A DNA stretch of 64,000 bases from Blepharisma stoltei ATCC 30299 (lineage: Eukaryota > Protista > Ciliophora): contig CBFDEM010000021.1 of NCBI GenBank assembly GCA_965603825.1, positions 558,001 through 622,000 of the forward strand. Reading direction: 5' to 3'. The translations under genes were made by a program, and so were the position numbers. The notes under the pieces are model-generated. The model was not told where the DNA came from, did not search any database, and was given only the letters and a program-made list of their open reading frames with translations. Below, piece after piece: positions 9,897 through 45,800 of the stretch (positions are counted from its first letter, which is position 1; every line of letters starts with the position of its first letter).

Positions 9897-12278
9897 ATGG
9901 AAATAAGGCGCGTTAATGGTCTATCAGACGCACAGAATACAGAGCAAGCTTTTCCTAGTTTCGTTGGCTTCTCAACTATAGGCAGCAAACAGCCTGTGAA
10001 GATTTCTGAAGAAAGCTGAAAAAAGGCCCAATCCTTATTTGGTGATGAAGAAGAAAGCCAAGGAAATTTTTTGGGTTCAAACTTCCAATTTCAGAAATTT
10101 TCAGATCAAAATATAGAGAAAAATACACAATTTGAAGCTCCGGTAATGCAAGCTGTAGGCTTTGGGAATATGAATCAGCAAATGCCTATGTTTACTTCTG
10201 GGTCATTTAAAAATATCTCGATATCTGATGAAGCTTTAAAAAAAGCTCAAGCGATGTTTTCATTTGAAGACGAAAGCCAAAAGAAGCAAATGCCTATGTT
10301 TACTTCTGGGTCATCCAAAAATATCTCGATATCTGATGAAGCCTTAAAAAAAGCTCAAGCAATGTTTTCATTTGAAGACGAAAGCCAATATAATGGGAAC
10401 TTTGGAGGGTTTTCCAAGCCTAAATCGCAAAATTCTCAAAATACGATTAGAAATTGCATAGAAAACCAGCAGGATGAATCTTGGGATATCAGAAGTATAG
10501 GTTCTAACTCAACCAGAACTAGCGAAGCAGGAAACAAATTTAAGCCTGTTTCTTTAGCCTTTAAATCAGATCGCAGTCAAACTATTAGAACTAAGCTGTC
10601 TACTAATTTAAGACCAGGAAGAAAAGAATTCTCTGCAAACGGACTAATCCGACCCAAAACATCTTCTTTAAAAAGCCCATTTAGACCTCCAACTACTTCT
10701 CTAAAAATTAAGCAGCCATCCCCAGTCCACCAATCTAAACGTCCTCTCCTAAAAACTCCAGAAACAGTAGAAAAATCTTTCAGACCTTCAACTCTTTCCT
10801 TAAAAGAAATAAATAACTTCAAACCCCTCTCCAAATTTTACGATTCCTCCGGCATTGCAATTACTGCAGAATCCTCCTTTGGCTACCTTTTCCATTGCAA
10901 CTGTTTTAACACCATGATCTGCTCCTGCAATAAGTCTTCCAATACAAGCTGAGAAGATTTCTACGACAAGCTCGTTGACGATGGGTTTAAATGCTCCAAA
11001 GAATGGGTAAATCATCACTATAGATTTCTTGTATGAAAATATGCCTCATATGAGAGAAGACTCCCCAAGTATAAAGGTGCCTTTTGTGTGAAAAAAATCT
11101 ATGAAGGATTGAAAAGGAGATTTGAAGTAGAAATTAGTGGGGGGAGAAGAAGTATCATTAAGAAAATTATTGATGGGGATGAATTTGCAAATAAAAGGAT
11201 GATACTGTGTGTGGGAACAGTCAAGCGGGATGAAAATGTTATCAGTTTAGAGCTAACTGATGGGTGATACTCTTTATTTAGTGTGGTCACAAAAAGTGAT
11301 CCGATATTTAATTTGGTGGATAGTAAAAAAATATTTCAAGGACAGAAAGTCGAGATTTATGGAGCTGAAAAGAAAGAATCGTGCATCAAAATATCATATA
11401 ATAGCTTAAGGAGAGCTCCTTGATATGCAAAACTTGGACTTTGCAATTCTCAGTACCCGTTTCCTGTGAATGTTTTATCAATCAATGAAAGTGGGGGATT
11501 AATTTCACGAGTTATTGGGTATATACAGAAAATTTATCCATTTATCAGCCAGGAATTCAGAGAAGAAACCCCTGCTTCAGAAGGAAAGTCTGCAAAACTC
11601 AGAGCCTTTTTTGATATCAAAATCAAAGACGCATTAATTGACCACAACAAGACAAAAGGTAAAGGCTCTGCAATAATCACAATTTACAACTCTGCGCCTT
11701 CCTTATATGAAGACTTGCTCCCTGGCCAAAAGGTTTCCTTCATAAACTTGCAAGTGTCAAAGCTTAAGTCTCATGGAAAATTGCATTTAAATTTCATCAA
11801 AGGCTCCAGTGTGATCACAACCAAAGAATATAGAAAAGACTTGATAAAGAAGCCAAGACTTCTCTCAGTAGGAGAGAAAATAAACAAAGAAGGTGACATT
11901 GTCGGAATTTTATTAAAAACAGTCAAAACAAGATCAGATGAAATATATTCATTGATTATGGCGAACTCTAATATGCATTTAATGGTGCTAAATATCCATC
12001 ACCCTGGACAGTTTGGTAAACCATTGACAAAATTAGTTCCATCATATGAAGGAAATATGAAAATCATTGCAATGAAAAATGTGTATGCAGAAGGCTACAA
12101 TAGCTTTACTACAAGCATAAATAGTGAAATGGTTAAAGGAAGCTACACCAATCATATTGCTGAAGAGGCTGAAAAGCTATCTGCGCTATGAAAGACTAAA
12201 GAAAGAGAAACATTGTGATTAGTTCATAAAAAAGAATGCGACAAATTTGGATGTGTTTGCCATTGGAATTATAGTTAG
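9897..12278 (+). CDS. BRCA2: BRCA2 homologue (3 BRC repeats, helical domain, OB folds)
   Basis: BRC-like F.T/S.S.K...ISDEALKKAQ..F; WVNHHYRFLV(W)K, LELTDG(W)Y, NSLRRAP(W)YAKLG; 7 in-frame TGA (10017, 10950, 11034, 11265, 11421, 12189, 12216); TAG 12276-12278. Confidence 0.92.
10177..10388 (+). repeat. Near-perfect 108-nt tandem duplication encoding two BRC repeats
   Basis: 10177-10280 vs 10285-10388, 4 mismatches seen by eye. Confidence 0.95.
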
Positions 12279-24813: not shown

Positions 24814-27525
24814 ATGATTGAAGATGCACTATTTTCACAACTAGAGACGAGAGTTAGAAAACTGATTAAAGAGCTCATAGAACCTATAAACAATAGAGTA
24901 GCAAACCATAAAGATTATTTAAAAGAGATACAAAAGCATAATGAATTTACAAAAACTTATATAGAAGGACTGGAGAGCTCTATAAATAGTTTAAACCACA
25001 AAGTAGCATTAGTTGATGATTATTCAAAAAAGTTTATGGAGTTTGAAGCACAGCAGAAGCTGCTGGAAACTAAATTTATCAAAGAAAACGAAAATGTCTT
25101 AAATCACATTGATTTAAATTCAAAAAGACTAAGCCATGTAGAAGAAAAGTCAAACGTAAATTGCAGCCAAATTGAATTATTAAGAATTGACATAACTAAG
25201 TTTGCATCAGATTTAAAATCAGTCAGGCTTAGTGTCGATGAAAAGATGTTCGAATACAAAGAAATCAATAAAAAAGCGCAAAATGAATTCTACGAAAAAC
25301 TTGTCGAGCTCCAAAACAGAATCATTGGGGTAGAAATAAATTATAACCAACTAAGTAGAGATTTATGTGAGGTGGATGTCACTGCAAGAAAAGCTGAAAG
25401 AATCGCGGAACAAATAAAAGAAGGACACAAAACAATAGGAAGCTCAATAAATAAGATGAAATTGAGAAACAAAGAAAACATAATGAAAGTTCAAGAAAAT
25501 CTATCAATGAAATCACAAGAATTAGAAGTCAAAATCAATGAAATGAAAAATTACATTAAGGTCGACCATACAATCAGCCTGAATTTAGGGATGAATGAAA
25601 CTCTTTTTAGCATTATTATTGATCCAAGAATGAAGCGTAAATTAGCTGAATATGAACAGTCCTTTTATGAAAAGTGAGAAGCCTTGGGGGTTTCAGAAGA
25701 AGTTAAAGAAAAAATAATAAAATCTCAGCTGATCACTTCTCAAATATTAGGAACTCCAATACCTCCATCTATGGAAAACAGTAAAAAGGCAAAACTAAAA
25801 GATCAATCATCCGCCTCTAGCTTGGCATCTTCTGCAGCGAATACTCGAAAGGTACCCAGAAGAAACTATATATCTAAGAGAGGCACATTTCAAAGCATCG
25901 CAAAAGAAGAAAAGCAGGATAGCAATTCGAATAGGTCAATGGAGTCTAGCTATAATGAGAAGAAAATCGAGCAGGTGGGCCAAAGTTTAGAAGCTAAAGA
26001 AGAGATTGGCAAAGAAAAATACGATATAATCACTAAAATAAATGAAGCGAATAATGAAAATCAGTCAGAAATAAATTCCCCGGAGCCTATTGTAATACAG
26101 ATTCCTGAAATTGCTGAATTGAGTGCGATTGAAAAGCCTAAAACGCCTGAAGAAACATTTGGAAAAAGAGATAATATTTCAGCTATAATACAGGAGTCTA
26201 AAGCCCCATCTGTCTATGAACCAAAATCTCCGATTAATAGACCAAGATCACCAATTGCTCCAAAATCTCCTGTCCATGAAATAAAAGCCTTTAATGACTC
26301 ATCAGCTCTAAAACAAAGTGTCAAATCCCGAAGCCCAAGCAGAAAATCTTCGAATCACGATTTTGACTATCCAAGCCCAGACATAAAGCCCAATCTATAT
26401 TTAAGAACTTCCCATGATAGACTTGACATGTCAAGAAAAACTGATATTTCACCATCTATCGACTATATGTCATTTATCCAAGATCTTCAATCTAAAATAG
26501 ACGATATCATTGAGAACCAAGAAATTATGAGATCTCAAGCAGACGAAGTTCAAGACATTCAAGATGAAATCAGAGGTCAATTAGATGAAATTAGAGACCA
26601 TATCGGCGATTTAATTACACAATATGAAGAAACCAAATATACCATAGATGACGATAAAGAAGTACAAGAAAGCATTCTTGGGCAAATAGATGAATTGAGG
26701 GAATTCTTAGAAGAAATAAAAACTCTTCATGACCAATTATCTGAGTTGCAAAGTCAAAATTTTAAAACAGTCTCAGAAAAAATAAAATTTTTGGAAGAAG
26801 ACGAGAAAAATCAAGTTGAAAATATGAAAAAAGAATGCTATGAAATGACTCAAAATGTAAGCAATGGGTATAAGACTGTTGAGCTTCTGGTTATGCAAGC
26901 TTTGAACGAATGCAATGCTGTAATTAATCAAAGGAAAAGAGACCATTCAGACACAATTACAGAGCTTAAAAGCATGAAGAAAACTATAAATGAGTCGAAA
27001 TCAGAATTCCAAAGTTATATCGGCTCCATTTTATTTTTAAAAAATTCAATAGAAAGCTTATTTGAATATGCAAAAATAAATAATGCTTTACTCATGCAAG
27101 ACGAAACAGACAGGAAAGCAATTTCTTTATTAGGGATTAAAGAAAAAACAAAAAACCTCGATAGTAAGATAGGAAAAGCGCCAGTTGCAATAGATAAGCA
27201 ATGCTTATCATGTGCTGGGCAAGTAGCCTCAGTTGTAAGCGCATTCAAAATAGCTTGTCTTAATTACAGTTCTAATCCAGTGACTTATCGGAACAACTCG
27301 TTCGAGAGAAAAGAACTCATAGATCTGCAATTGAGACTAATTGAAAGCTCATTGGAAGGATACGATTCAAATAGGCAAGATGCTAGTATATCAAGATCAA
27401 TAACTCCGACTTTAATGATGCCAAGACAAAACTCAGCAAGCGCAGAAAGGCAGCTTTATAGATCGGTCTCACCGAGTCCCGAGTTTCCTCCTTTATCGAA
27501 GAAATCGATTGCTTCACTATTATAA
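24814..27525 (+). CDS. Large coiled-coil protein with C-terminal CLSC motif (DUF4795-like)
   Basis: ORFs 24814-25677 and 25684-27525 in frame across TGA 25675; KQCLSC motif. Confidence 0.8.
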
Positions 27526-27979
27526 TTTGAGTCTTTTAATTTCTTAATAAAGTTATTCAATGTAAACGTTAAAACATCTGATATGAACAAAACCGACTTA
27601 ACTGATAAGATAGTGACAGACTCTTTTGGCAAAAACAAAAAAGCAAAGCTATATAAATTCTAATATAGTCAGCCATATTAACTGGAAATTTGCTTGGCGA
27701 AGAAAATGGAAAGCTTGGAAATTCAGCATTTTTTATAAAAGTCTTGCTAATGGATTCAATGACGAGAGCCAAATAAAGCAAATATAAATTTTGTAAATAT
27801 AGATTGACTCTAATTTTTTACTAATTTAATTTATAGTCAAATAAATCAAGAATAAGCAATAATTATGATTTTCATTATAATTAAATAAAATCGAAAAGAG
27901 AAAAAATAGTTCAAAGCTATTCAGCTCATTAAAATTTATTCCCAAAAGACATTTCTGATGAAAGCATTATAATTAGTAA

Positions 27980-30900
27980 ATGGAAATAATTACTTCTCGT
28001 CCGCTCATTAAAGCGCAGAAGTTCGTAAGCAAAGAAGAATTAATTAAGCTAGTCGACATCTACATGGATAGGACTTTTGATGAGGACATACAAGTTATTG
28101 AGGAGACTGGAGGGATAAAGGAATTTGAGAACTTACTCATGGTGGAATTTTCTCAGGGCTTGAAATCTGATGAAGATCCCTCTGAAAGAATTTCTCATTT
28201 TGGGTCAAACAAGAAAACTGATAAAGAGCCACCATCTTTCTGGAAAATGTGTTGGCAAATTTTTAAAGATAAAATATTAATAACCCTCTCAGTGCTTGGG
28301 TTCATCAGCCTCGTTATTGGCGCCACTTTGGCTGAGCACCCCGAATATGGCTGGATTGAAGGTTTCAGTATTTTAGTGTCAGTGGTTGTTATTGTGTTAG
28401 TAACAGCAATAAACGACTATAAAAAAGAAAAGAAATTCTTCGAGCTTCAGAGCATTCATAAGAGTAGACAGCATTTTACCATACTTCGAGACGGAAGCTA
28501 TAAAACAATTCATCCTGATGAGATATTGGTTGGAGACATTTTGAAAATAGACCAAGGTTGCATTATTCCTGTTGATGGAGTTATTATAACTTCTCATCAC
28601 CTTCAGGTCAATGAAGCTTCTTTAACTGGCGAAAATGATAACTTACATAAAGCTTCCTATGAAAAATGCATCAAAAAAATAGAGGAATACTTAGAAAACA
28701 ATGTCCCAGGGCCAAACAGTAAGCACGATATTCCATCCCCGATTTGCATATCTGGAACTAATGTCGTAGAAGGAGCAGGTGAAATACTAGTCATTGCTGT
28801 TGGTGAAAATTCAAAAGAAGGAAGGATTAAAGGACTTAGCATAGGGGAAGACGAAATTTCTCCACTTAAAACAAAAATTGATAATCTCATTAGTAGAATT
28901 TCGAACGTAGCAATAGCAATTAGTTTTACTTCAGTGTTTGTGCTATATATTCGATTTTTTATTGAATTAGGAGTAGGAACAACAACATGGGATACAGATG
29001 ACGGAATTAGAACGTTAATTGAATTTGTGGTTGAGGGAATTATTATCCTTGTTGTCTCTATCCCTGAAGGGTTGCCTCTTACTGTCACTCTGACATTAGC
29101 TTATGCTGTCAAAAAAATGCAGCAGGATCACAATTTAGTAAAGAAAATCCGAGCTTGCGAAATCATGGGAGGGGCTGACACTATTTGTTCAGATAAGACA
29201 GGAACGTTAACCAAAAACGAAATGGAAGTCAAATCCTTTTCTATTAATGCCATTATTTATCAACGGTCTGAACTCAGTCAGCTATTTCAAAATCATGATG
29301 ACTATCTAGGCTTTTTTAAAGATGCAATATCACTTACCACGACTGCACGAATTGATGAAGATAAGAGAGAAATAGGATCAAAAACTGAACTAGCTATGAT
29401 AAAATTTCTTGATAGCTTAGGTATCACAGATTATCAATTTATCAGAGATTATTACAAAGGAAAAATCATCGCAAAAAACCCTTTCAGCTCTGTAAGAAAA
29501 AGAAGCAGCATTATTATTCAATATAATGAAGATATCAAAAGAATTTACGTTTTAGGAGCTTCTGAATATATCCTTTCATCGTGTACGCATACGCTTACGC
29601 CTCAAGCAACTATAAATAGAATTAGAAAAATTCAGAGAACCAAATCAAATAAGGATATAAACGAAATGGCCTCAGAGGGGCTAAGAACTATTGGCCTAGC
29701 ATTTAAAGATTTGAGTGAAAGCGAATTGGACCAAGTGATTAATATCAAAAACTATCATGCTTCTCTTGAAGAAACAGATTTAGTGCTTATAGGTGTCCTC
29801 GGGATCTATGATCCCCCTAGAGACGAAGTGCAAAAAGCTATTGAAGACTGTAAAGCAGCCAGTATTAAAGTTCGAATGGTAACAGGGGATAATAAGGACA
29901 CAGCGTTTTCTATTGCGAAATCTATAGGCATTGCGAATAAAAACAGCCTTGTGCTATCTGGAGAAGAGTTCAGAAAAGAAGTCGAAGGAATCGTTTGTGA
30001 GAAGCACCGTACTGAAATCTGTGAATGTCAAAACTCCAAAGGAAATGCCAGAATTGACGTTGTTGGAAATATTGAAAGGTTCAAAGAAATTATCGATAAC
30101 CTAGATGTCTTAGCAAGGTCTCAGCCAGAAGATAAGTACATCCTTGTCACAGGATTAAAACAATTAGGCCATGTTGTAGCTGTTACTGGAGATGGGACCA
30201 ATGATGCGCCTGCGCTAAAAAAAGCAAATATAGGGTTTGCAATGGGAATTTCTGGAACTGAGATGGCTCGAGAAGCAGCAGACATAATTCTTCTTGACGA
30301 TAACTTTAGTTCTATCGTTAAAGCTGTTCTTTGGGGAAGAAGCATTTATGAAAATATTCAAAGGTTCCTCCAGTTCCAACTGTCTGTTAACCTAACTGCT
30401 GTTGTTGTAGCAATTGTAGGTGTTGTTTCGATAAAGTCAACAGTTTTGACCGCAGTTCAATTGCTTTGGGTGAATTTAATCATGAACACATTTGCTTCCT
30501 TAGCTTTAGCAACAGAATCGCCATCTGAAAGCTTACTTACAAGAAAGCCAAATAGTCCTAAAGACTCTATTATTACAAATTTGATGTACAAGCATATTTT
30601 TGGCCAATCATTTTTGCAAATTTCGGTTATTCTCGCTATGGTTTTTGCTGGGGAATGGTTTTTACCAGAATATGGAAATACAAGCGATATGAGTGTTTTA
30701 GTAAACCCAGATGACTCAAGTATGGTAAGGTCTGGAAGACCTTATCACTTGGATGGCTCAAAAGACTATATTGATTTCTATGATGACCCAGATTATGGGC
30801 CTAGTCGGCATTTTACTTATATATTTAACATTTTTGTGCTGTTCCAGCTGTTTAATGAAATCAACTCTAGAAAACTAAGAGATGAATGGTGAATCTTTTC

Positions 30901-31132
30901 TAATATAAGGAAAAGTAAATTTTTTATCCCAATATGGCTATTCACATTTGTTGTTCAAGTTATAATGGTGGAATTTGGAAGCATTGCTATGAGCTGCCAT
31001 CAAGAAGGGTTAACTGTTGAGCAATGGTTTATTTGTGTTGCATGGGCTTCCTCTACTCTTGTTTGGAGATTTGTTTTGCTACTTATTCCCCCTTTTAATC
31101 TTAAAAGCAGGGTAGATGAGGAAAATGGATAA
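27980..31132 (+). CDS. P2B-type (PMCA-like) Ca2+-ATPase, copy 1 (1050 aa)
   Basis: IPEGLPL, DKTGTLT, MVTGDN, TGDGTNDAPAL; TGA 30890-30892 aligns to TGG in copy 2; TAA 31130-31132. Confidence 0.95.
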
Positions 31133-31310
31133 AAGTTCAAATATTAAATCGTGGCAGTTTTAGATTTTTTATTTAAAACTAATACGTAATTTATTTAATT
31201 TCTAAAACCCATCTATATCAACTAACTTTAATGAATATATGTAAAATTTAAGATACTTAGCCCCATCTTGATAAAATGATTCTCATATGGTAAAGCGTAA
31301 AATCAACCTA

Positions 31311-31952
31311 TTTACTGGAAAATCTTCGGTTGAAGTATTGCTAATTCCGAATTTTACTTTTCTATAATCTCTTTACTTTCATGAACTTTTAGAAATTTTA
31401 ATTGTATTTTAATATTGAGGGGTAAAAGAAGACCACAAGTTATTAGCAAGTGACAAAGTCCAGCTGGTTTCAAAGCTTGAAATTGATGAATCCTCTTTTC
31501 AGGATATTGCACATTTCATAAAACTCGTCAAGCTTTCTAGAATTTAAACTATTGTTATTTTACTCCTCATTTGATTTTAAGCTTTATCCTTTCACTGGTA
31601 ATGACACACAGCAAGTTCGCGCACCTTCAGTTGCTTGAATCCTAGTTGTAAAAAATGGCGAAGTCAATATAGTTCTTGTTTTATTCAATAAAATCGATGA
31701 AAACAACTTATTAAGCTATTTTATAGAAAATGACGTAAATATCATTCAGGCAATAGGAGAAATGATGTTTGGATTGCTAGAGATTATCAAACTTTGAAAA
31801 GAACTAGAGACAAGGCCCTTTAAACAAAAGAAGCTAGCTGAGGAAAATACAAATAGAGCAAACTGCACACTTGAAATAATGATAAAAGAAAGCTCCTTTA
31901 AAAATGCATTGAAATTGCTACTGAAGAAAATGTTAAAACACAGCCCATTTTG
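31311..31952 (+). pseudogene. Degenerate copy of the 5' part of the GAF-PDE gene (about 36961-37525)
   Basis: Colinear nucleotide similarity; TAC>TAG at 31538-31540, 1-nt deletion near 31885, 81-bp insertion. Confidence 0.92.
31342..31424. mobile_element. 81-bp TA-bounded insertion (IES-like)
   Basis: gtattgc-TA-[79 nt]-TA-aaagaagaccac versus gtattgc-TA-aaagaagaccac at 36992 in the intact gene; about 22% GC; in-frame TAA. Confidence 0.7.
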
Positions 31953-32100
31953 AAATTGCTGAATTGAGTGCGATTATGGAGCCTAAAATACCTGGAAAAT
32001 TTTTGTAAAAAGATATAATATTTCACCTATAATTCACGAGCCTAAAGCCCCGCCTGCCTATAAAAACCCCTCCAATTAGTAGACCAAGATCGCCTTTAGC
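31951..32100 (+). pseudogene. Degenerate internal fragment of the coiled-coil gene (about 26106-26260)
   Basis: tgaaattgctgaattgagtgcgatt identical at 26106 and 31951; similarity continues to agaccaagatc. Confidence 0.9.
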
Positions 32101-32363
32101 CAGTCATATTAACTGGAAATTTGCTTGGCGAAGAAAATGGAAAGCTTGAATAATTAACATTTTTTAAAGTCTCGCCAATACATCCAATAAGAGAACCAAA
32201 AATTGCAAATTATTATTTTATAAAATAGATTACTTATGATTTTTACTAATTAATTTCTAATTAAATAAAATAAAATCGAAAAGAGAAAAATAGTTTAAAG
32301 CTGTTAGCTCATTAAAATTTATTCAAAAAAAGACATTTCTGGTGAAAGGATTATAATTAGTAA
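32101..32363 (+). repeat. Duplicated upstream region of the PMCA genes (copy of about 27670-27979)
   Basis: catattaactggaaatttgcttggcgaagaaaatggaaagcttg shared; colinear up to the ATG. Confidence 0.9.
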
Positions 32364-35300
32364 ATGGAAACAATTACTTCTCGTCCGCTCATTAAAGCGC
32401 AGAAGTTTGTAAGCAAAGAAGAATTGATGAAGTTAGTCGACATCTACATGGATAGGACTTTTGACGAGGATATGCAAGTTATCGAAGATACTGGAGGGAT
32501 AAAAGAATTTGAGAGCTTACTGGGGGTAGAATTTTCTCAGGGCTTGAAATCTGATGAAGATCCCTCTGAAAGAATTTCTCACTTTGGGTCAAACAAGAAA
32601 ACTGATAAAGAGCCACCATCTTTCTGGAAAATGTGTTGGCAAATTTTTAAGGATAAAATATTAATAACCCTCTCAGTGCTTGGATTCATCAGCCTCGTTA
32701 TTGGCGCCACTCTGGCTGAGCATCCCGAATATGGCTGGATTGAAGGCTTCAGCATTTTAGTGTCAGTGGTTGTTATTGTGTTTGTAACAGCAATAAATGA
32801 CTATCAAAAAGAAAAGAAATTCTTCGAGCTTCAGAGCATTCATAAGGATAGACAGCATTTCACCATACTTCGAGATGGAAGCTATAAAACAATTCATCCT
32901 GATGAAATATTGGTTGGAGACATTTTGAAAATAGACCAAGGCTGTATTATTCCTGTTGACGGAATTATTATAGCTTCTCATCACCTTCAGGTCAATGAAG
33001 CTTCTTTAACTGGCGAAAATGATAACTTACATAAAGCTTCCTACGAAAAATGCATCAAAAAAATAGAGGAATACTTAGAAAACAATGTCCCAGGGCAAAG
33101 CAGTAAGCACGATATCCCATCACCAATTTGCATATCAGGAACTAATGTCGTAGAAGGAATAGGTGAAATGCTAGTCATTGCTGTTGGTGAAAATTCAAAA
33201 GAAGGAAGGATTAAAGGACTTAGTATAGGGGAAGACGAAAATACTCCGCTTAAGACAAAAATTGACAATCTCATGAATAAAGTTTCAAACTTAGCAATAG
33301 CAATTAGCTTTACTTCAGTTTTTATACTATATATCCGATTTTTTATTGAATTAGGAGTTGGAACAGCAGCATGGGATACAGATGATGGAATAAGAACGTT
33401 AATTGGATTTGTGGTTGAAGGAATCGTTATCCTTGTAGTTGCTATACCTGAAGGGTTGCCTCTTGCTGTCACTCTGACATTAGCTTATTCTGTCAAAAAA
33501 ATGCAGCAGGATCACAATTTAGTAAAGAAAATCCGGGCTTGCGAAATCATGGGAGGGGCTGACACTATTTGTTCAGATAAGACAGGAACGTTAACCAAAA
33601 ACGAAATGGAAGTCAAATCCTTCTCAATTAATTCTACTATTTATGAACGATCTGAGCTAAATCAGCTATTTCAAAATCATGATGACTATCTAGGCTTTTT
33701 TAAAGATGCAATATCACTTACCACGACTGCACGAATTGATGAAGATAAGAGAGAAATAGGATCAAAAACTGAACTAGCTATGATAAAACTTCTGAATAGC
33801 TTAGGTATCACAGATTATGAATATATCAGAGATTACTATAAAGGAAAAATCATTGCAAAAAACCCTTTCAGCTCTGTAAGAAAAAGAAGTAGCATAATTA
33901 TTCAATATAATGAAGATATCAAAAGAATTTACGTTTTGGGAGCTTCTGAATATATTCTTTCATCGTGTACGCATACGCTTACGCCTGAAGCAACTATAAA
34001 TAAGATTAAAAAAATTCAGAGAACCAAATCAAATAAGGATATAAACGAAATGGCCTCAGAAGGGCTAAGAACTATTGGCCTAGCATTTAAAGATTTGAGT
34101 GAAAGCGACTTGGACCAGGCAATTAATATCAAAAACTATCATGCTTCTCTTGAAGAAACAGATTTAGTGCTTATAGGCATATTTGGAATCTATGATCCCC
34201 CTAGAGACGAAGTGCAAAAAGCTATTGAAGACTGTAAAGCAGCCAGTATTAAAGTTCGAATGGTAACAGGGGACAATAAGGCCACAGCATTCTCTATTGC
34301 GAAATCTATAGGCATTGCTAATAAAAACAGCCTTGTGCTATCTGGAGAAGAGTTCAGAAAAGAAGTCGAAGGAATCGTTTGTGAGAAGCACCGTACTGAA
34401 ATCTGTGAATGCCAGAACACCAAAGGAAATGCTAGAACTGACGTTGTTGGAAATATTGAAAGGTTCAAAGAAATTATCGATAACCTAGATGTCTTAGCAA
34501 GGTCTCAGCCAGAAGACAAGTATATCCTTGTCACAGGATTAAAACAATTAGGCCATGTTGTAGCTGTAACAGGAGATGGGACCAATGATGCACCTGCGCT
34601 AAAAAAAGCAAATATAGGGTTTGCAATGGGAATTTCTGGAACTGAGATGGCTCGAGAAGCAGCAGACATAATTCTTCTTGACGATAACTTTAGTTCTATC
34701 GTTAAAGCTGTTCTTTGGGGAAGAAGCATTTATGAAAATATTCAAAGGTTCCTCCAGTTCCAACTGTCTGTTAACCTAACTGCTGTTACTGTTGCAATTG
34801 TAGGTGTTGTTTCGATAAAGTCAACAGTTTTGACCGCAGTTCAATTGCTTTGGGTGAATTTAATCATGAACACATTTGCTTCCTTAGCTTTAGCAACAGA
34901 ATCGCCGTCTGACAGCTTACTTACAAGAAAACCAAATAGTCCTAAATCCTCTATTATAACAAAGTTGATGTTAAAGCATATTTTTGGTCAATCATTTTTG
35001 CAAATTTCGATTATTCTCGTTATGGTGTTTGCTGGGGAATGGTTTTTACCAGAATATGGAAATACAAGTGATATGAGTGTTTTAGTAAACCCAGATGACT
35101 CAAGTATGGTAAGGTCTGGAAGACCTTATCACTTGGATGGCTCAAAAGACTATATTGATTTCTATGATGACCCAGATTATGGTCCTAGTCGGCATTTTAC
35201 TTATATATTTAACATTTTTGTGCTGTTCCAGCTGTTTAATGAAATCAACTCAAGAAAAATAAGAGACGAATGGTGGATCTTTTCGAATATAAAAAAGAGC

Positions 35301-35516
35301 AATTTTTTTATCCCAATATGGCTATTCACATTTATTGTTCAAGTTATAATGGTGGAATTTGGAAGCATTGCTATGAGCTGCCATCAAGAAGGTTTAACTG
35401 TTGAGCAATGGTTTATTTGTGTTGCATGGGCTTCCTCTACTCTTGCTTGGAGATTTGTTTTGTTGCTTATTCCTCCTTACAAAGTAAATGATCAAGTGAA
35501 CGAAGAAAGTAACTGA
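32364..35516 (+). CDS. P2B-type (PMCA-like) Ca2+-ATPase, copy 2 (1050 aa if TGA 35514 stops; extends to TAA 35594 if read as Trp)
   Basis: Colinear paralogue of 27980-31132 with the same motifs; 3' end ambiguous. Confidence 0.93.
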   Translation: METITSRPLIKAQKFVSKEELMKLVDIYMDRTFDEDMQVIEDTGGIKEFESLLGVEFSQGLKSDEDPSERISHFGSNKKTDKEPPSFWKMCWQIFKDKILITLSVLGFISLVIGATLAEHPEYGWIEGFSILVSVVVIVFVTAINDYQKEKKFFELQSIHKDRQHFTILRDGSYKTIHPDEILVGDILKIDQGCIIPVDGIIIASHHLQVNEASLTGENDNLHKASYEKCIKKIEEYLENNVPGQSSKHDIPSPICISGTNVVEGIGEMLVIAVGENSKEGRIKGLSIGEDENTPLKTKIDNLMNKVSNLAIAISFTSVFILYIRFFIELGVGTAAWDTDDGIRTLIGFVVEGIVILVVAIPEGLPLAVTLTLAYSVKKMQQDHNLVKKIRACEIMGGADTICSDKTGTLTKNEMEVKSFSINSTIYERSELNQLFQNHDDYLGFFKDAISLTTTARIDEDKREIGSKTELAMIKLLNSLGITDYEYIRDYYKGKIIAKNPFSSVRKRSSIIIQYNEDIKRIYVLGASEYILSSCTHTLTPEATINKIKKIQRTKSNKDINEMASEGLRTIGLAFKDLSESDLDQAINIKNYHASLEETDLVLIGIFGIYDPPRDEVQKAIEDCKAASIKVRMVTGDNKATAFSIAKSIGIANKNSLVLSGEEFRKEVEGIVCEKHRTEICECQNTKGNARTDVVGNIERFKEIIDNLDVLARSQPEDKYILVTGLKQLGHVVAVTGDGTNDAPALKKANIGFAMGISGTEMAREAADIILLDDNFSSIVKAVLWGRSIYENIQRFLQFQLSVNLTAVTVAIVGVVSIKSTVLTAVQLLWVNLIMNTFASLALATESPSDSLLTRKPNSPKSSIITKLMLKHIFGQSFLQISIILVMVFAGEWFLPEYGNTSDMSVLVNPDDSSMVRSGRPYHLDGSKDYIDFYDDPDYGPSRHFTYIFNIFVLFQLFNEINSRKIRDEWWIFSNIKKSNFFIPIWLFTFIVQVIMVEFGSIAMSCHQEGLTVEQWFICVAWASSTLAWRFVLLLIPPYKVNDQVNEESN

Positions 35517-36786
35517 GACTCATGATTTCACTGATCTTCTTGAGTAATAACTAAAAGTTGAAAAAAATTAAGAGTATTTAAATTAATTCCATAAGAAGAG
35601 AGATATTAATTCTCGCTTAATAAAGCTTGCTCAGTATCTTTTATCATTAAGCCTATAATTTTTACTGCTTGATGCATTTTCCCTAATTTTCTTATTGTGA
35701 GAGTCTTTTCCTTGCTCAAAGGGAATTCTTAAAATTTCTTTATCTAAAATGTTTTAATCCCATTAATTCTTTGAAAAAGCTTCATATAATTAATTTCGAT
35801 AGAGGTATATTTTCCTAAACGAATCTTTAGATTAATCACACAAGCCCATGATCTTGGGTTAAATCATAACTTCTCAATAGGTTTACACCTTCCGAGCTTC
35901 TTTCTATTAAGTATTGATCAAGAATTTTTAAAGAGTTCACAAAGCGACACAAATTTGGAATAGCTTGATATAAAAAATCTGTAGATTTTTCAAGTTGATA
36001 AAATTATAATGCTGCTTATAGGATGCATTTTCACTGCAGTGTATCATTTTTAGATATGGCATGATGATAATACACAAGACAAATTTACAAATTGATTGAT
36101 AGGTTTTTCTTGTTGGTTTAACATTGAGTTGCAAAGAACAAGAAGTGAAAAACATATTTTGGCCCCGCAGCCCTGGAACAAAGAACAAAGGCATCCAAAT
36201 ATTTATATCACTAGCATTGAAAAGATGCAATAGCTCAATACGCTTTATATATGGTGCTGATGAGCTTCCCGCACATTCTTTTATCGCCTTAATACTTTTT
36301 GGATCATTATGATCCTCGATAGCAATGCTGCCATTTCAATATAAGCAAATAATTTTTCTTCTAAAATCGAAGCATTCAGTCTTAGTTTTGTAATTCGACC
36401 TAGTAGTAATTTTTTCATATTCATCAGGTTTTTGAGTATTTCTTATTCATCTTAAAGTCATTTGATAAGGCTATTAGTTCTATGGATTGTTTCTAAACTT
36501 TGTTTTGTAAGTTTTCTTAAAGATTATTAATATGTGTAAACTGATTAATATACTATTAGCGATGCCAATATATTAAATTTAGAAAATGGAGCTATCTATC
36601 CAATTTAATTTTTTTAGCAACAATCTTATTTTTATAATAAGCAAAAGTTTCAATAACTGCTTTTTATAGCCAATATTTAGTTCAATATAGCTAAATTAAG
36701 GATAATTCCTATTCCACATTTTATCAAAATATGAAGTCATAATTTATTTCTTACATTTAGACAATAATATAATTTTTTATAATTTA

Positions 36787-39700
36787 ATGCAGCAAAATCA
36801 TGAAAGCGCATTTAACAGCTTTAGTTATTCCCAAATTAATTCCTCAGCAGGAATTCTTGATGCTCTTCTAAAATTTTCCAACATTCTCTCAGATTTGTTA
36901 AGAATTGAAAATCTATCGATAGAAACTCTTAAAGGAAAAATTATTTATATATGTAGGATACTTACTGGAGCATCTTGAGTTGAAGTATTGCTAAAAGAAG
37001 ACCACTATTTATTAGCAAGTGGCAAAGCCCAACCAGTCTCAAAGCTTGAAATTGATGAATCCTCTTTTCCAGGATATTGCGCATTGCATAAAACTCGCCA
37101 AGCTCTCTACAATTTAAACTCATCGTCATTTTACACCTCATTTGATTTTAAGCTTTATCCTTTCACTGCCAATGGCACACAGCAAGTCCCCGCATCTTCA
37201 GTTGCTTGCATCCCAATTGTAAAAAATGGCGAAGTCAATATAGTGCTTGTTTTATTCAATAAAATTGACGAAAACAACTCAATAAGCTATTTTACAGAAA
37301 ATGACATGAATATCATTCAGGCAATAGGAGAAATGATGCTTGGGCTACTAGATATTATCAACCATTGCAAAGAATTAGAGACAAAGTCCTTTAACCAAAA
37401 GAAATTAGCTGAGGAAAATACAAATATAACAAATTGCACACATAAAATGATGATAAGAAGAAAGCTCCTTTCAAAATGCATTGAAATTATTACTGAAGAA
37501 AATGTTATAACGCAGCCTATTTTAAAACTAATTGGAGAAGTCATGGAAAGTGATGGACTAATAGTACACTTATTAGAAAAAAGCAATTCTTTGACGCCTA
37601 TTGTTGTCAGTGGATTAAGCGATATTGCCTTTTCAACAAAAACATCTGAATACGTTGCACTGGTAATTAAAGAAATCCTGAATGTCAACGATCTTGCTGC
37701 TGAACCATTATGAGATAAAGATAAAAAGCTAAAGATGAGAAGTTTATTAGCATGTCCTATATTTGACAAGAATAATGAAGTCGTAGCTGTGATTGAATTC
37801 TTCAGAAAACATAAACCTTTTAGCTCAAGTGATGAAAGAATTGCAAAAGAATTATTAAAGGCGATTGAAAAAGTTCACCCAGAAAGGTTTATTGGGAGAA
37901 GCAACCCCAACTTATCAAAAGTTCAAGAGAGGGCGATTAATTCAAAATTAAAAGACATCCGCATATTTAGGTTTAATCAAGATGATTTTTTTAACTTCGC
38001 AAATATATTAGAAGAAATTCGAACAAGCCTGAGACAGCTGGTAAGTCATGAAGAGTCAAATATATACATTGCAGATCAAAAATGGGGATGCTTATGGACA
38101 AAGCAGTCAGAAGAATGCGACACTTTAACTCAACTTATGGAGCAAGATACTTTATTAGGCTATGTTTACCATATACAAAAGCCTGTAATACTACCAAATA
38201 ATGATATTCAGCTATCAGATAGTGCAAGATTCCATAATCAATTTGTTATTTGCGCTCCAATAATCAGTGACATTTCAGAGTACCCTGTAATTGGCATTTT
38301 ATTACTGACAAGAAATCATAAAGCCTTCACTGCTTCTGAAATATGGATTTTGAATATTTTTTGTACAAAAATCGCGAAAAATTTTGAAAATATTTATATT
38401 TATTCATCTGAGTCTAAAGCTATCATATCTGAAATGCCACCATCTCCTGATTTGTCACCTACTGAAAATTTTAGGAGAATGAATTCAAAATCTTATATAA
38501 AACTAAGGCAGGAATATGCCCAAGACTTTTCTTCTCCAACAGAAACACCAGAAGCCCCTCACAACATGAATGATTTATATAGCTTTTCCCATCTCCCTCC
38601 AAATAAAATCAATGAGCTAAAGATTTTATTGTCATCTATACAGTCTAACCCAGGCAATTCCCTATCTACCTTAGCCCATGGACTTCAAAAAATTATTCCT
38701 AGTCAAGGGAGTAAACTTTTACTGTTTGATCAGACTGAGCAATACTTAGTTGACGCTATTTCTGGAAGCTTAATGAAACCATCAGGACTTATCAATCAAT
38801 GCCTTGAAAAACGGCTGCCAATCATATTAAAATCAGATGCGTGAGCAAACAAGTGTTTTGATGATCATATTGATTGTCTTGGTATTGAGGATGAAATTGA
38901 TTCATTTTTAGCTGTTCCTGTTCAAAGTATAATGGATCACCCATTAGGAGTCCTCGCCTTTGTTAATGCTTCTACTAGTTTTGAAGAAGAAGATATCGCA
39001 ACTGCTAAATTTTTATCTTTAATAACCCGTGAATTTGCAATGGCGAAGGATGAATCTCTGAAAAATTATCAAAGTGTAGTAAAGATGGGTAGAAAGCATA
39101 AAATGCTGCAGCAATGATGCAAACAAGTGTTTTTTGTGGCAAACTCAGCCCAAAATAAAATGACGATTGCTAAAGATATTCTCCACAGTCTTTTCGAAGA
39201 AGAAAAAATTGACTCACTTATTAAATACGCATTAGAGATTATATGCGCTTTAACTAACGCTGAAGAAGCTGGGGTTGTTTATAAAGAAGGAAATACCTTT
39301 GTGGAACGTCTACTGGTAAAAGGGAAATACAAAAAGAGCACAGCAATAGAGGAAGAAGCCTGGGTAATGAAATCTCTTGATATAAGAAGAACTATATCAT
39401 TGAATACTCACATAAATAGAGAAAACATGATAATTGTCCCATATCTTCAAGAACAATGCGAAACTGTAATCGTAAAAGTCTGAAACAAAAAAGACGATAC
39501 ACTTTCGTACTATTGCAATTTCAGCAAAGATGATGAAATTATCATTTATAGCTTCGCTGATGCTATAAGTGAAGCTCTTAATATCTTTAATGATGAAAGC
39601 AAAATAGATTCATTAATGAAGCTTAAGCAGCTTATAAGAGACCACGCCTCAAATTTAAACACTTATTCCTTTATGAGCACTATAAGATGCGCGTTGAAAA

Positions 39701-41790
39701 AACTTTTAGATTGCGATAGGGCTAGCATTTTTGTTAGAGAAGGTAAAAACATGGTAATAAGGGCTCAAGGCCTTGATTTAGGAATTCCTGTAGGTTTAAG
39801 TATTCCCATCGGCAAAGGGATAATTGGAAATGTAGCTCAAACAGCAAAAATAGAAAATATTAAAGATGTATATGAAGATCCAAGGTTTAACCCAGAAGTT
39901 GATAGGTCAACTGGCTATAAAACATCAACAATGCTATGCATGCCTGTATTAGATCCTAAAGGCAAAGTAATTGCTGCCGTCCAAATGATCAATAAAAGGC
40001 AAGGATTTTTCGACAAAAGTGATGAACAAACTTTGGAAATTTTCTGCGAAATTATCTCGACTGTTTTAGAGAACTGGGATATCTTCCAACACCAAATTGA
40101 AGAAAGATCAAGATTTTTAAATGTTTTTAACAGCATAGGTAACTATATTTTGGTGCTTGACAAAGATGGAACACTTGAATACTGTAATAAAGCACTCGAA
40201 AATCTGTTTGGTGTTCCAGAAAAAATAGCGAAAAAATCTCATTATTCGAGTTGACTGAGAGATAATAGGCAACTCGTTCATGATATTACAGGAGTTTACC
40301 AAAAATTTTCTAAGCGTATTTACAGGTCATCTCAAAAGATTGCATCAGTTCTAAAGAAAAAAGTTAATAACCCGTCACCAGAACCACAAAATTTAATTAT
40401 GAACTACACCATTATTGAGTTGCAAGATTTCTTTAATTTAAACTCATTTGGAGTAATTCTTATATTTGAAGATGCAACTGCAATTGAAGAGTTAAATTCA
40501 AAATTCATGAAAATCCAAAACGAATTATCAGCGCTAAAAAATTCCGTTAATTCAGAAACCTCCCTTCAAAGATGCATTCAAAAATTAACCTTTATTGCCT
40601 CAGAAAACGATACAGATAACGAAACTTCAAACCAAATATTTGAAATAGTCAAAGTTTTAAAAGAAGGAAACTTAAATAGAGCAGTGGTTAGTTTTCCAGA
40701 AGATTTGGAAACTTTGAGAGCTGAAGTCAAGCAAGGACTGAAAGCTTATGTTGGGCTAGAAGAAAATAATAATGAAAACGTAAGATTATCTGTACCAGTT
40801 TCTCATCAAAGGCGAAAATATTCAGGAATATTAACAGTTGATATAGAAATGCTAAGAAATATAGACATTAATGTTTTTGAAATCGAGGACCATTTCCAAT
40901 TTGTATATGGAATGTATCAAGATTTTGATCTTATTAATCAATTTGATATCCCTCAAGATAAACTTGAAAATTTTGTAAGGGATGTAAAAGAGCATTATGA
41001 AATTTATATTAACCCATTTCATAACTTTTATCACGGACTAAACGTGCTGCATTCGATATATTTCCTATTGTCTTCTACCTCAGGAGCCTCATTTTTTGGC
41101 CCATTAGAAATATTTTCATTTTTCACAGCAGCACTATGCCATGATATTGAGCACCCAGGGAGAACAAATGCATTTGAAATGAATAGAGAGAGTCATTTAT
41201 CGGTTATTTATAATGATAAATCTGTATTAGAAAATCATCATGCAGCCACTGCATTCAGATTGCTCCAAATTGAAAAAAATAACATCATACAATCATTGGC
41301 ACCTGATTTCAGGAAAAGATTTAGGAAAGTTGTCATCGTTAGCATACTGGGGACTGATATGGCAAAGCACTTCCCAATGATATCAAATATGACCGCAAGG
41401 TTTAAAGATATACATGAAAATCCGCTGGGATCGAGAGACTCGGATCTTGATGATGTTGCAGAGTTTCTTTTGCATTGCTCAGACTTAGCGCATCAGTGTA
41501 AAAAGGCAGAAGTTTACCAAATGTGGTCACAAAAGTTGGCAGATGAATTCACAAGGCAATATGAAGAAGAGCTGAGACTGGGAATGCCACCTACAGAAAT
41601 ATTTAAGGATTTAGACAAGCCTGAAGTGTATTATAGCAATGAATTAGGATTTCTGAAATTTATGATTAAACCACTTTGGGAGTGCGCTAATTTATGGCTA
41701 AGTCCACATATTGACAAAATGATAGAGAATATGAATAACAACATTGAGTTTTATCAAAAGAAGAAAGAAGAGCATACCAAAAATAAATAA
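36787..41790 (+). CDS. Class I cyclic-nucleotide phosphodiesterase with multiple GAF domains and a PAS-like domain (1667 aa)
   Basis: Seven ORF pieces in one frame split by six TGA (36976, 37711, 38842, 39115, 39481, 40252); DVYEDPRFN.EVDRSTGYKT..MLCMP; FHNFYHG, HDIEHPG, LENHH, TDMAKH. Confidence 0.93.
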
Positions 41791-42857: not shown

Positions 42858-45800
42858 ATGGATTTAGTAAGACGGGGAATCGCATCTCAAGAAGAATATG
42901 AAGCTGCCATCAGCCTGCTTCCTGAATCAATTAAAAAAGCATCTCTGAATGTCTGCAAAGACGTAGTTTCATTCATCAAAAAAATTATCAAGGATAAGCA
43001 TTCACCTCCAAAATCTAAATTATTAGCGATAAAATTGTTTCATACATGCATGATGGCTGGCAACGTCCATTTTCTCCAGTACTCTCAAAAAAAAATAATG
43101 AGCAGGTTAACAATTTTGGCTGCGCATAAGAAAAATAATCCTGATGAATCTCGAGGAGATGATCTGTGGGGAAGAGACAGCTTGTCATCTGAAGAAAATA
43201 GGAGGGCATCAAGAGAGTTTTTAATGAATTTATTGGTTTTTATCCAAACTTGAGCATCTCAGTATGGAAAAACGCCTGATGGGAAAATGAGCGCTTATTA
43301 TAAGGCTTATCAGAGTTTAAGACAAGATGGAGTTTCTTTCCCACAAAGAAATCTGGCTGCTAGTCCTATGCCGAGGCAAGCAGAAAACAATGCCCCAAGA
43401 CAATCAATGCAGAATTATCCATCACAAGCAAGACAGCCGCAGAGGTCAAATAGAAGATTGAGCACACAAAAGAAGACTGAAATTCAAAGCACATTAGAAA
43501 TACTTTCAGAAATGCTCAAAACAGATGGATGTGACCAAGATTTCTTAAATGAGATAACAGGATCATTAAAAGTCCAGAAAGGTGAAATAGAAAGAGAAAT
43601 TGCTATTGCTAGCAATTCGAATGATTCTGAGTATTTGCAAGAACTTATAATTATAAATGATAGGATTCAAGCAGCTTTGGAAAAGCACTCAGAAAGCCAA
43701 ATAATTGAAGTCCCTGATGATATGGAAGAGGGAATTTCCGTTTCAGTTCCAGCCATTTCTAAGCCAGCTAAAGATTCTATGAGAGATTCGGAAAAATTTC
43801 AATTCAGCTTTGACATGCCGGCCCAACAAGAATTTTCTGCAATGAATTTCGCAACCCACAACCCTAATAGTTCTGATTTATTATCCCCAGAGAAATTTAA
43901 ATCAGAAACCAGCATCAAACTTCCTAAATCACAGTCAAAAGAAGAAGGTGATAAAAGAGAAATTCTCTTACCTGCTAAAAAAGAAGAAAAAAAAGAAATT
44001 ATCCCACCAGCAAAAAAAGAAATAAAAGAAGTTGCTTCTCCAATTAAAAGAGAAAAAGAAATAAGGGAAGTTATTTCACCAGTTAAAAAAGAGGCAGAAA
44101 TTAATGCAGGATTAGTAATAGAAAATCAAAGCAATGGAAAAATAAAAGATTTAGAAAAAAGAAATGAGATTTTAGTCGAAGAAAACAAAAAATTACGTGA
44201 AATTAAGAGTGAGTTCAAAAAGGCAAAACAGGAAAATGAGTTTTTAAGAGAGGAAAACGAAGGCATGAAAGAGACTATTAAAATGATGCAAGAATCAATT
44301 GAAGAAATCAAAGATTTAAGAAAATCCAATAAATCCCTAAAAGCTGTGGTTAATGAATTTGAAGATTGAAAAAAAGAGAGAGAACAGCTGACCAGCGAAA
44401 ATAATAGGCTAAAAGAAGAAATCTCTGGCTTAGAAAAAGCTGTTGAAAGCACAGGAGACTTCAACGAAGAGAAGAAACAGTTAAATCAAGCTAACAAGCG
44501 CTTAAAAGATATAATAAAAGGACTTGAAGAAACAGGTAAACTAAAAGAAAGCCAGTTCAATGGAAAAATAAAAGAATTAGAAAAAATAAAGGAATCTCTC
44601 AATGAAGAATTATCCAATTTAAATGAAATTCCCGTGCTACTAAATAATTCAAAGCAGGAAAATGAAAAACTAAAAGTAGAAAATAATCAAATGAAGGAAA
44701 CTATTAAGATTATGCAAGAGTCAATAGAGGAAATCAAAGAATTAAGAAAAACAAATAAAAGTTTGAGTTTGAAGATAAGCGAGCTTGAGGAAATAATAAA
44801 AGCAAAGGAAAAAGTAGAAAGCGAAAATGAGGCATTAAGGGAAGAAATTGAAAGACTCGAGAAAATGGTTGAAAATAAAGAAGATATAAATGAAGAAAGA
44901 AAAGAATTGAAACAAGTTAACAAGCATTTAAAAGAAACTATAAGAGAGCTTGAAGGATCGATTAAATTAAAAGAAGAGCTGGCGAAAGAATACGATAATT
45001 TAGCAAATGAAAACGAAGAGTTGAAGAAAAATCTTCAATCTCAAAAAGAGCTTGAAAAGCGTATCAATATCATTTCAAACGAAAATGAAAAGTTGCAAAC
45101 AAGACTTCTTTCAAGCAGTGATAAAGAAAAGCAATTAGCAGATTTAATGAGCCAGAATAGAGCTTTATCTAATGATTTTGAAAAACTGAAAAAAGAGTAT
45201 AGCGAAATTCAAAATCAAAATTCTTCTTTAATGCAAAACCTATCAGAGCTACAACAAAGTTCAAAGGAATTAAAAGAGGTAAGCAAAGAAAATTCAAAGC
45301 TTAAAAGCATAATTAATGACTATGAAGGGAAATTAAAGGATAGAGAAGAGTTATTTGCTGAAAATCAAAATCTAAATGAAATGCTGAGATTGAGTGATGT
45401 GAAAGAAAAAGAATTTGAAAAAGTTTCATCAGAAAATCAAAAATTAAAGATGATCCTCCAAGTCAACGAAGGAAAAATATCTGAGCTGGTTTTGATCAAA
45501 AATGAAAATGAAAAGCTTAAGACTGCAGTCAAAAAGTATGAAGATCAGCTTACAAAAATTAATAAAAAATATGATGATATAAAAAATCAAAATCAAGAAT
45601 TTCAAGAGAAAACTTTAGAGTTGAGTGATTTGCAGAAAAAAATCGAAGAATTCAAGCAAAAAAAGAAAGAGTTTAAAGAAAATCATGAAAAGGTAGTAGA
45701 AACACTTCAAACAGAAATAATGGATCTTAGGAAAATTAATGAAATAAACGATGATAAATTACAAATTTTAGATTCACTTGTTTTTGAAAACAGCAATTTA

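Follow-up and report, generated by a model that had tools for sequence, protein, structure and literature searches.

The question raised by this locus is how an 81-bp segment, bounded by TA and poor in G and C, came to stand in a dead copy of a gene while the live copy on the same chromosome carries a single TA at the corresponding position. A first-pass annotation had read the segment as a fossil IES, copied in the germline together with the gene, still excised from the copy that is needed and no longer excisable from the copy that is dead.

The segment lies in a stretch of 64,000 nucleotides from Blepharisma stoltei ATCC 30299 (hereafter the window, whose numbering we use unless another contig is named). 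The window, which is positions 558,001–622,000 of contig 21, has 34% GC and belongs to an assembly of 41,464,486 bases in 64 contigs. Its long frames stay open only with TGA translated as an amino acid. These features match the published somatic (MAC) genome of this strain, which comprises 41 Mbp in 64 telomere-to-telomere sequences, with UGA translated as Trp and with introns of 15–16 bp.

The tandem duplication and its phosphodiesterase fragment

Comparison of the window with itself, combined with a reading of the junctions, identifies one tandem segmental duplication, about 5.8 kb long, within positions 26106–37527. The duplicated unit starts inside an upstream gene (26106), continues through a P-type cation ATPase gene and ends in a phosphodiesterase gene at codon 249 (37527). 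The two ATPase genes, copy A at 27980–31129 and copy B at 32364–35516, both on the forward strand, are 94.7% identical over the coding sequence without any indel. Their divergence at 4-fold sites is 0.105, i.e., neutral change since the duplication amounts to only about 5% per lineage. The duplication junction is found at about 31951–31955, where a fragment of the upstream gene (31951–32094, forward strand; the equivalent of 26106–26252, to which it is 81% identical) is joined to the phosphodiesterase fragment by a GAAA microhomology.

The complete phosphodiesterase gene lies at 36787–41790 on the forward strand. Its coding sequence of about 1,670 codons is open with TGA as Trp and specifies a cyclic-nucleotide phosphodiesterase with multiple GAF domains, a PAS domain and a PDEase_I domain, which is the live gene that the first-pass annotation had proposed. 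The relic at 31309–31955 matches this gene on both sides of the insert. Its left homology arm (31309–31343, forward strand) is identical to 36958–36992 at 29 of 34 positions, corresponding to codons 58–69 or thereabouts of the live gene, and a match of this quality in phase with the right arm has a chance probability of about 1e-9 by a binomial estimate. Left of these roughly 34 bp the sequence is unrelated. The right arm (31423–31955, forward strand) extends over 533 bp with 88% identity to 36992–37527 and ends at the duplication junction.

The fragment had been called a pseudogene, and the details bear this out: it covers residues 58–249 only, since codons 1–57 are missing and the homology stops at residue 249, and it has suffered three 1-bp frameshifts and two in-frame stops. 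It differs from the live copy at 0.123 differences per site. The relic is non-functional from the moment of the duplication and has been drifting since. At a conserved SWVEVL motif, the Trp codon is TGA in both the live gene and a paralogue on contig 24, and TCG (Ser) in the relic.

The sequence immediately upstream of the relic is a 214-bp orphan block (31095–31308, no strand assigned) of about 23% GC, which is unique in the genome and does not align to the 1,479 bp that occupy the same place in the second copy (35479–36957). Its first 35 bases are the last codons and the stop of ATPase copy A, and neither the window nor the genome yielded a template for the block.

Other departures between the two copies are scattered over the duplicated unit. 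Identity between the ATPase genes falls abruptly from about 94% to about 50% over the last 12 codons (31094/35478 to 31129/35516); copy A terminates in FNLKSRVDEENG-TAA, and copy B has YKVNDQVNEESN-TGA, its frame continuing to a TAA at 35591. The second copy is without approximately 1,413 bp of upstream gene and spacer (26257–27669 versus 32094–32100), and at the junction of this deletion a TA repeat is missing and microhomology does not exceed 1 bp. The only other indel above 20 bp inside the aligned blocks is a non-coding one of 39 bp upstream of ATPase copy A (27844–27882), absent from copy B and with A-rich junctions. The interval from ATPase copy B to the live phosphodiesterase (35517–36786) measures about 1.27 kb, has 28% GC and contains no convincing open frame. 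This is long, given that the intergenic regions of this genome are described as short. A stretch of 41 bp within it is 90% identical to positions 246761–246802 of contig 1. Elsewhere in the window there are local tandem repeats with units of 104 bp (96% identity) and about 430 bp (68% identity), at 10177–10388 and 44116–44975 respectively. The window holds no other paralogue pairs for a survey of insert lengths.

Structure and polarity of the insert

The relic reads GTTGAAGTATTGC-TA (31342–31343), then 79 nt, then TA (31423–31424)-AAAGAAGACCAC, and the live gene reads GTTGAAGTATTGC-TA (36992–36993)-AAAGAAGACCAC, with a single TA in the same context. Together with both flanking TA copies the insert occupies 31342–31424 (no strand assigned). 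If 81 bp are taken out and one copy of the repeat is kept, the relic becomes identical to the live gene at 27 of 27 bases across the joint, so that the exact match claimed for an excision leaving one TA is indeed obtained. The description of the insert itself, TA-bounded, 81 bp long, of about 22% GC, present in the relic and absent from the live paralogue, also agrees with our reading, with one correction. The direct repeat is the 3-bp TAA (31342–31344 and 31423–31425) rather than TA alone, and four registers of excision are therefore equivalent. The empty site in the live gene is the TAA at 36992–36994 (forward strand), whose TA makes up positions 2–3 of the Leu69 codon CTA. A GC content as low as the 22% of the insert is seen in 1% of the 81-bp windows of the live coding sequence; non-coding DNA near the insert has 23–28%. 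The insert also contains an in-frame TAA.

How often would such a repeat arise by chance? When an 81-bp insertion is placed at random in the window, a TA-containing direct repeat results in 2.4% of 200,000 trials, a figure that is weakened by the fact that the indel was picked beforehand because it is TA-bounded. A repeat of at least 3 bp that includes TA results in 1.4% of the same number of trials with the sequence of this window.

The ends of the insert are TAATTCCGAA on the left and, on the other strand, TACCCCTCAA on the right. They form no terminal inverted repeat, as had been noted before; only an imperfect subterminal pair of 15 nt is present, at 73% identity. In the 41.5-Mb somatic genome the whole insert matches only itself, and each 24-nt end is unique within 3 mismatches. 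A search for a template of the 81 bp in the window, the orphan block, the 1.5 kb that only the live copy has and the paralogue locus on contig 24 gave no match above shuffled controls.

The direction of the change can be judged from more distant relatives. Nine paralogues, with protein identities from 28% to 65%, align without gaps across the SW(V/I)E(V/I)L motif that spans the site, which makes the insert-free state the ancestral one for the coding sequence and the 81 bp a derived addition. Judged by these alignments, the insert is the derived state and not the remainder of a deletion in the live copy, which the nine ungapped paralogues rule out. The idea that the 81 bp are ancestral gene sequence, coding or intron, since lost by the live copy, has in its favor that 81 is a multiple of 3. 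It is contradicted by all nine paralogues (9/9), and the in-frame TAA and the low GC content count against it as well. Nor is the insert an intron, because its registers begin with TA, AA, AT or TT, none of them has the form GT..AG, and introns in this genome measure 15–16 bp. We thus consider ancestral gene sequence extremely improbable.

The contig 24 paralogue is located at 416486–420202 of that contig, and the genome has at least nine further relatives of the N-terminal region of the GAF-PAS-phosphodiesterase. Some of these relatives have stops in frame, and additional dead copies may be among them.

Possible origins of the insert

If the insert derives from an IES, it should resemble the known ones. 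For Blepharisma stoltei, Seah et al. (2023, PMC9942856) report 39,799 IESs. Their density is about one per kb, at which the presence of an IES in a fragment of 0.6 kb is not unlikely. Three quarters of these IESs are bounded by a TA-containing direct repeat, among which TAA/TTA is common, cryptic excision sites included (PMC9942856). The insert shares this property with the periodic TA-bound IESs, having a TA-containing terminal repeat of which one copy is found at the empty site, and a TA-containing repeat is expected for 2.4% of random insertions against about 75% of real IESs. Approximately one quarter of the IESs are short (65–115 bp) and mostly unique, with length peaks at 65, 72, 82, 92, 101 and 110 bp, and the 82-bp class comprises the 1,035 TA-bound IESs of 80–84 bp (Table S1, PMC9942856). 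The size fit proposed by the first-pass annotation is real in that 81 bp falls in the 80–84 bp class, but since the classes together span about 55% of the range 65–115 bp, the agreement carries little weight. Like the short IESs, the insert is single-copy, non-coding and intragenic.

Two properties set it apart. The published end consensus, TAT rrn ttt t (PMC9942856), is fitted by neither end of the insert, and as the consensus is weak, this lowers the case for an IES without excluding it. In addition, the insert is part of a MAC assembly, and under a strict genomic definition this speaks against its being an IES in this strain. IES retention is described as a continuum (Seah et al., 2023, PMC9942856). 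The cryptic IESs of the same species (Seah et al., 2023, Supporting Information) are likewise somatic segments bounded by TA or TAA and roughly one IES in length, although they are defined by rare deletions in somatic reads, whereas the insert is known here from assembly sequence.

Taken together, these comparisons suggest that the insert may be an unexcised germline-type spacer, one that belongs to the periodic TA-bound IESs and lies in a dead duplicate, a reading to which we give about an even chance. The sequence of events would be as follows. The tandem duplication copied the 3′ part of the upstream gene, the P-type ATPase gene and codons 1–249 of the phosphodiesterase, and would have left a truncated phosphodiesterase fragment without function from the start. 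A spacer would have been located in the germline copy of this fragment and would not, or mostly not, have been removed when the somatic genome was made. Most likely the spacer would already have been present in the germline copy of the ancestral gene, at the TA of codon 69, and would have been duplicated along with it. For the gene that is needed, either the germline would have lost the spacer precisely, or each sexual generation would have to excise it with precision. Because the relic is dead, there is no selection for excision there, and retention would not have been selected against. We infer all three of the less direct elements of this account, i.e., the germline derivation, the origin before the duplication, and the cause of retention. 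The full scenario, in which the insert was inherited from the germline copy and the live gene still has a partner IES, is one that we put forward only tentatively.

A cause of failed excision is not visible in the sequence, given that only about 5% of neutral change per lineage has accrued since the duplication and that the insert has kept its two TAs and a length on one of the peaks. Two candidates for the retention, which sequence alone does not distinguish, are a change at an end position that has not been recognized as important and maternal protection. The spacer could thus have become fixed in the soma through a small change at its ends, or through maternally inherited protection after retention in an old MAC. 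Maternally inherited protection following a first retention is known for some Paramecium IESs. The specific version in which a true IES exists in the germline of both copies and is retained in the dead one by such protection (of the small-RNA scanning type), with no reason in the sequence, seems to us quite improbable.

The observations made so far uphold much of the first-pass interpretation, namely the live phosphodiesterase, the dead fragment, the derived insert with its TA repeat and the 81-bp length, to which the single-copy state can be added. Against a clean reading as an IES stand the ends, which are off consensus, the lack of a visible sequence cause for lost excision, and the orphan block 34 bp to the left. 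This second breakpoint, so close to the insert, makes filler DNA of a compound rearrangement a serious rival. According to that explanation one or more events replaced the promoter and codons 1–57 of the relic by the 214-bp orphan sequence and also inserted the 81 bp, so that the TAA would reflect microhomology used in joining and the segment would never have been an IES. The orphan block (31095–31308) fits well, as it is unique, has a GC content of 23% much like that of the insert and cannot be aligned to the 1,479 bp it replaced, and an island of no more than about 34 bp of original sequence separates the two orphan pieces. The junction of the duplication used a short microhomology too, further indels, of 10–39 bp, are seen in non-coding DNA of the unit, and the ends of the insert depart from the IES consensus. 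Still, only 2.4% of random insertions would create a TA-containing repeat, and breakpoints at this locus do not in general carry TA, since the large deletion 26257–27669 was formed without a TA repeat. Templated filler would normally have a source, yet neither orphan piece has one in the window or the genome, and the 81 bp would coincide with an IES length class. On balance we regard a filler origin as doubtful.

A different process could have produced the TAA repeat directly: after the duplication, an element targeting TA or TAA, of the Tc1/mariner or Pogo type and for example a remnant of a germline BogoMITE, might have inserted into the dead fragment and then shrunk internally, so that the live gene would never have had it. 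TAA is the target-site duplication of Bogo and BogoMITE, members of the Pogo family, and the insert resembles them both in its TAA/TTA flanking repeat and in the run of C beside one repeat copy; at its right end, on the other strand, TTA-CCCCTC is a faint echo of their C-rich terminal repeat. The resemblance covers only 6 bases of the 30-bp repeat, however, and the left end shows none of it. BogoMITEs have C-rich terminal inverted repeats of about 30 bp and a length of about 390 bp, whereas the insert has no such repeat, is 81 bp long and is single-copy in the soma, its two ends included. There are no similar copies of the insert in the somatic genome, though the BogoMITE family is mostly germline-limited and most such copies would be invisible in this assembly. 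The terminal repeat itself is also absent from the somatic genome by a genome search, and hence offers no somatic copy for comparison. Finally, a reduction from about 390 to 81 bp that spared both copies of the target, within about 5% of neutral divergence, would be unlikely. A mobile element is thus an improbable source.

The insert in relation to IES conversion in Paramecium

Should the live gene have a matching IES in the germline, the locus would provide an excised and a retained member of one pair, about 90% identical and within 6 kb of each other on one chromosome. Comparison of the two members could reveal the bases or the epigenetic state on which the excision of short IESs in Blepharisma depends, and the pair would thereby serve as a natural experiment, in a heterotrich, on whether sequence or epigenetic information controls this excision. 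The locus would also add a further instance of germline-limited DNA turned somatic, in a lineage far from Paramecium. That route from germline to soma had been presented as a point of interest by the first-pass annotation, but it is not new: the conversion of IESs into MAC sequence is already described in Paramecium (PMC3464196, PMC8354472), and a single further case adds little to knowledge of the process as such.

In Paramecium, 64 groups of IESs are conserved in three of four paralogues, and in 6 cases the fourth IES was recruited into an exon (Arnaiz et al., 2012, PMC3464196). The same 64 groups include 23 deletions of the region, often marking the formation of a pseudogene (Arnaiz et al., 2012, PMC3464196), and according to Sellis et al. 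(2021, PMC8354472) one way in which an IES can be lost is to turn into MAC-destined sequence. The correspondence with these systems is not complete. For the Paramecium cases the demonstration drew on germline sequence from both paralogues, whereas the Blepharisma insert is known from the somatic assembly, and the route described by Sellis et al. is mutation of a TA (PMC8354472), whereas both TAs of the insert are intact. Blepharisma, moreover, is a heterotrich and far removed from Paramecium. With these differences, the arrangement at our locus would nevertheless be like the IES conversions of Paramecium (PMC3464196, PMC8354472): a putative former IES would have become somatic in one paralogue, the other paralogue is clean, and the change is associated with a pseudogene, as is often the case there.
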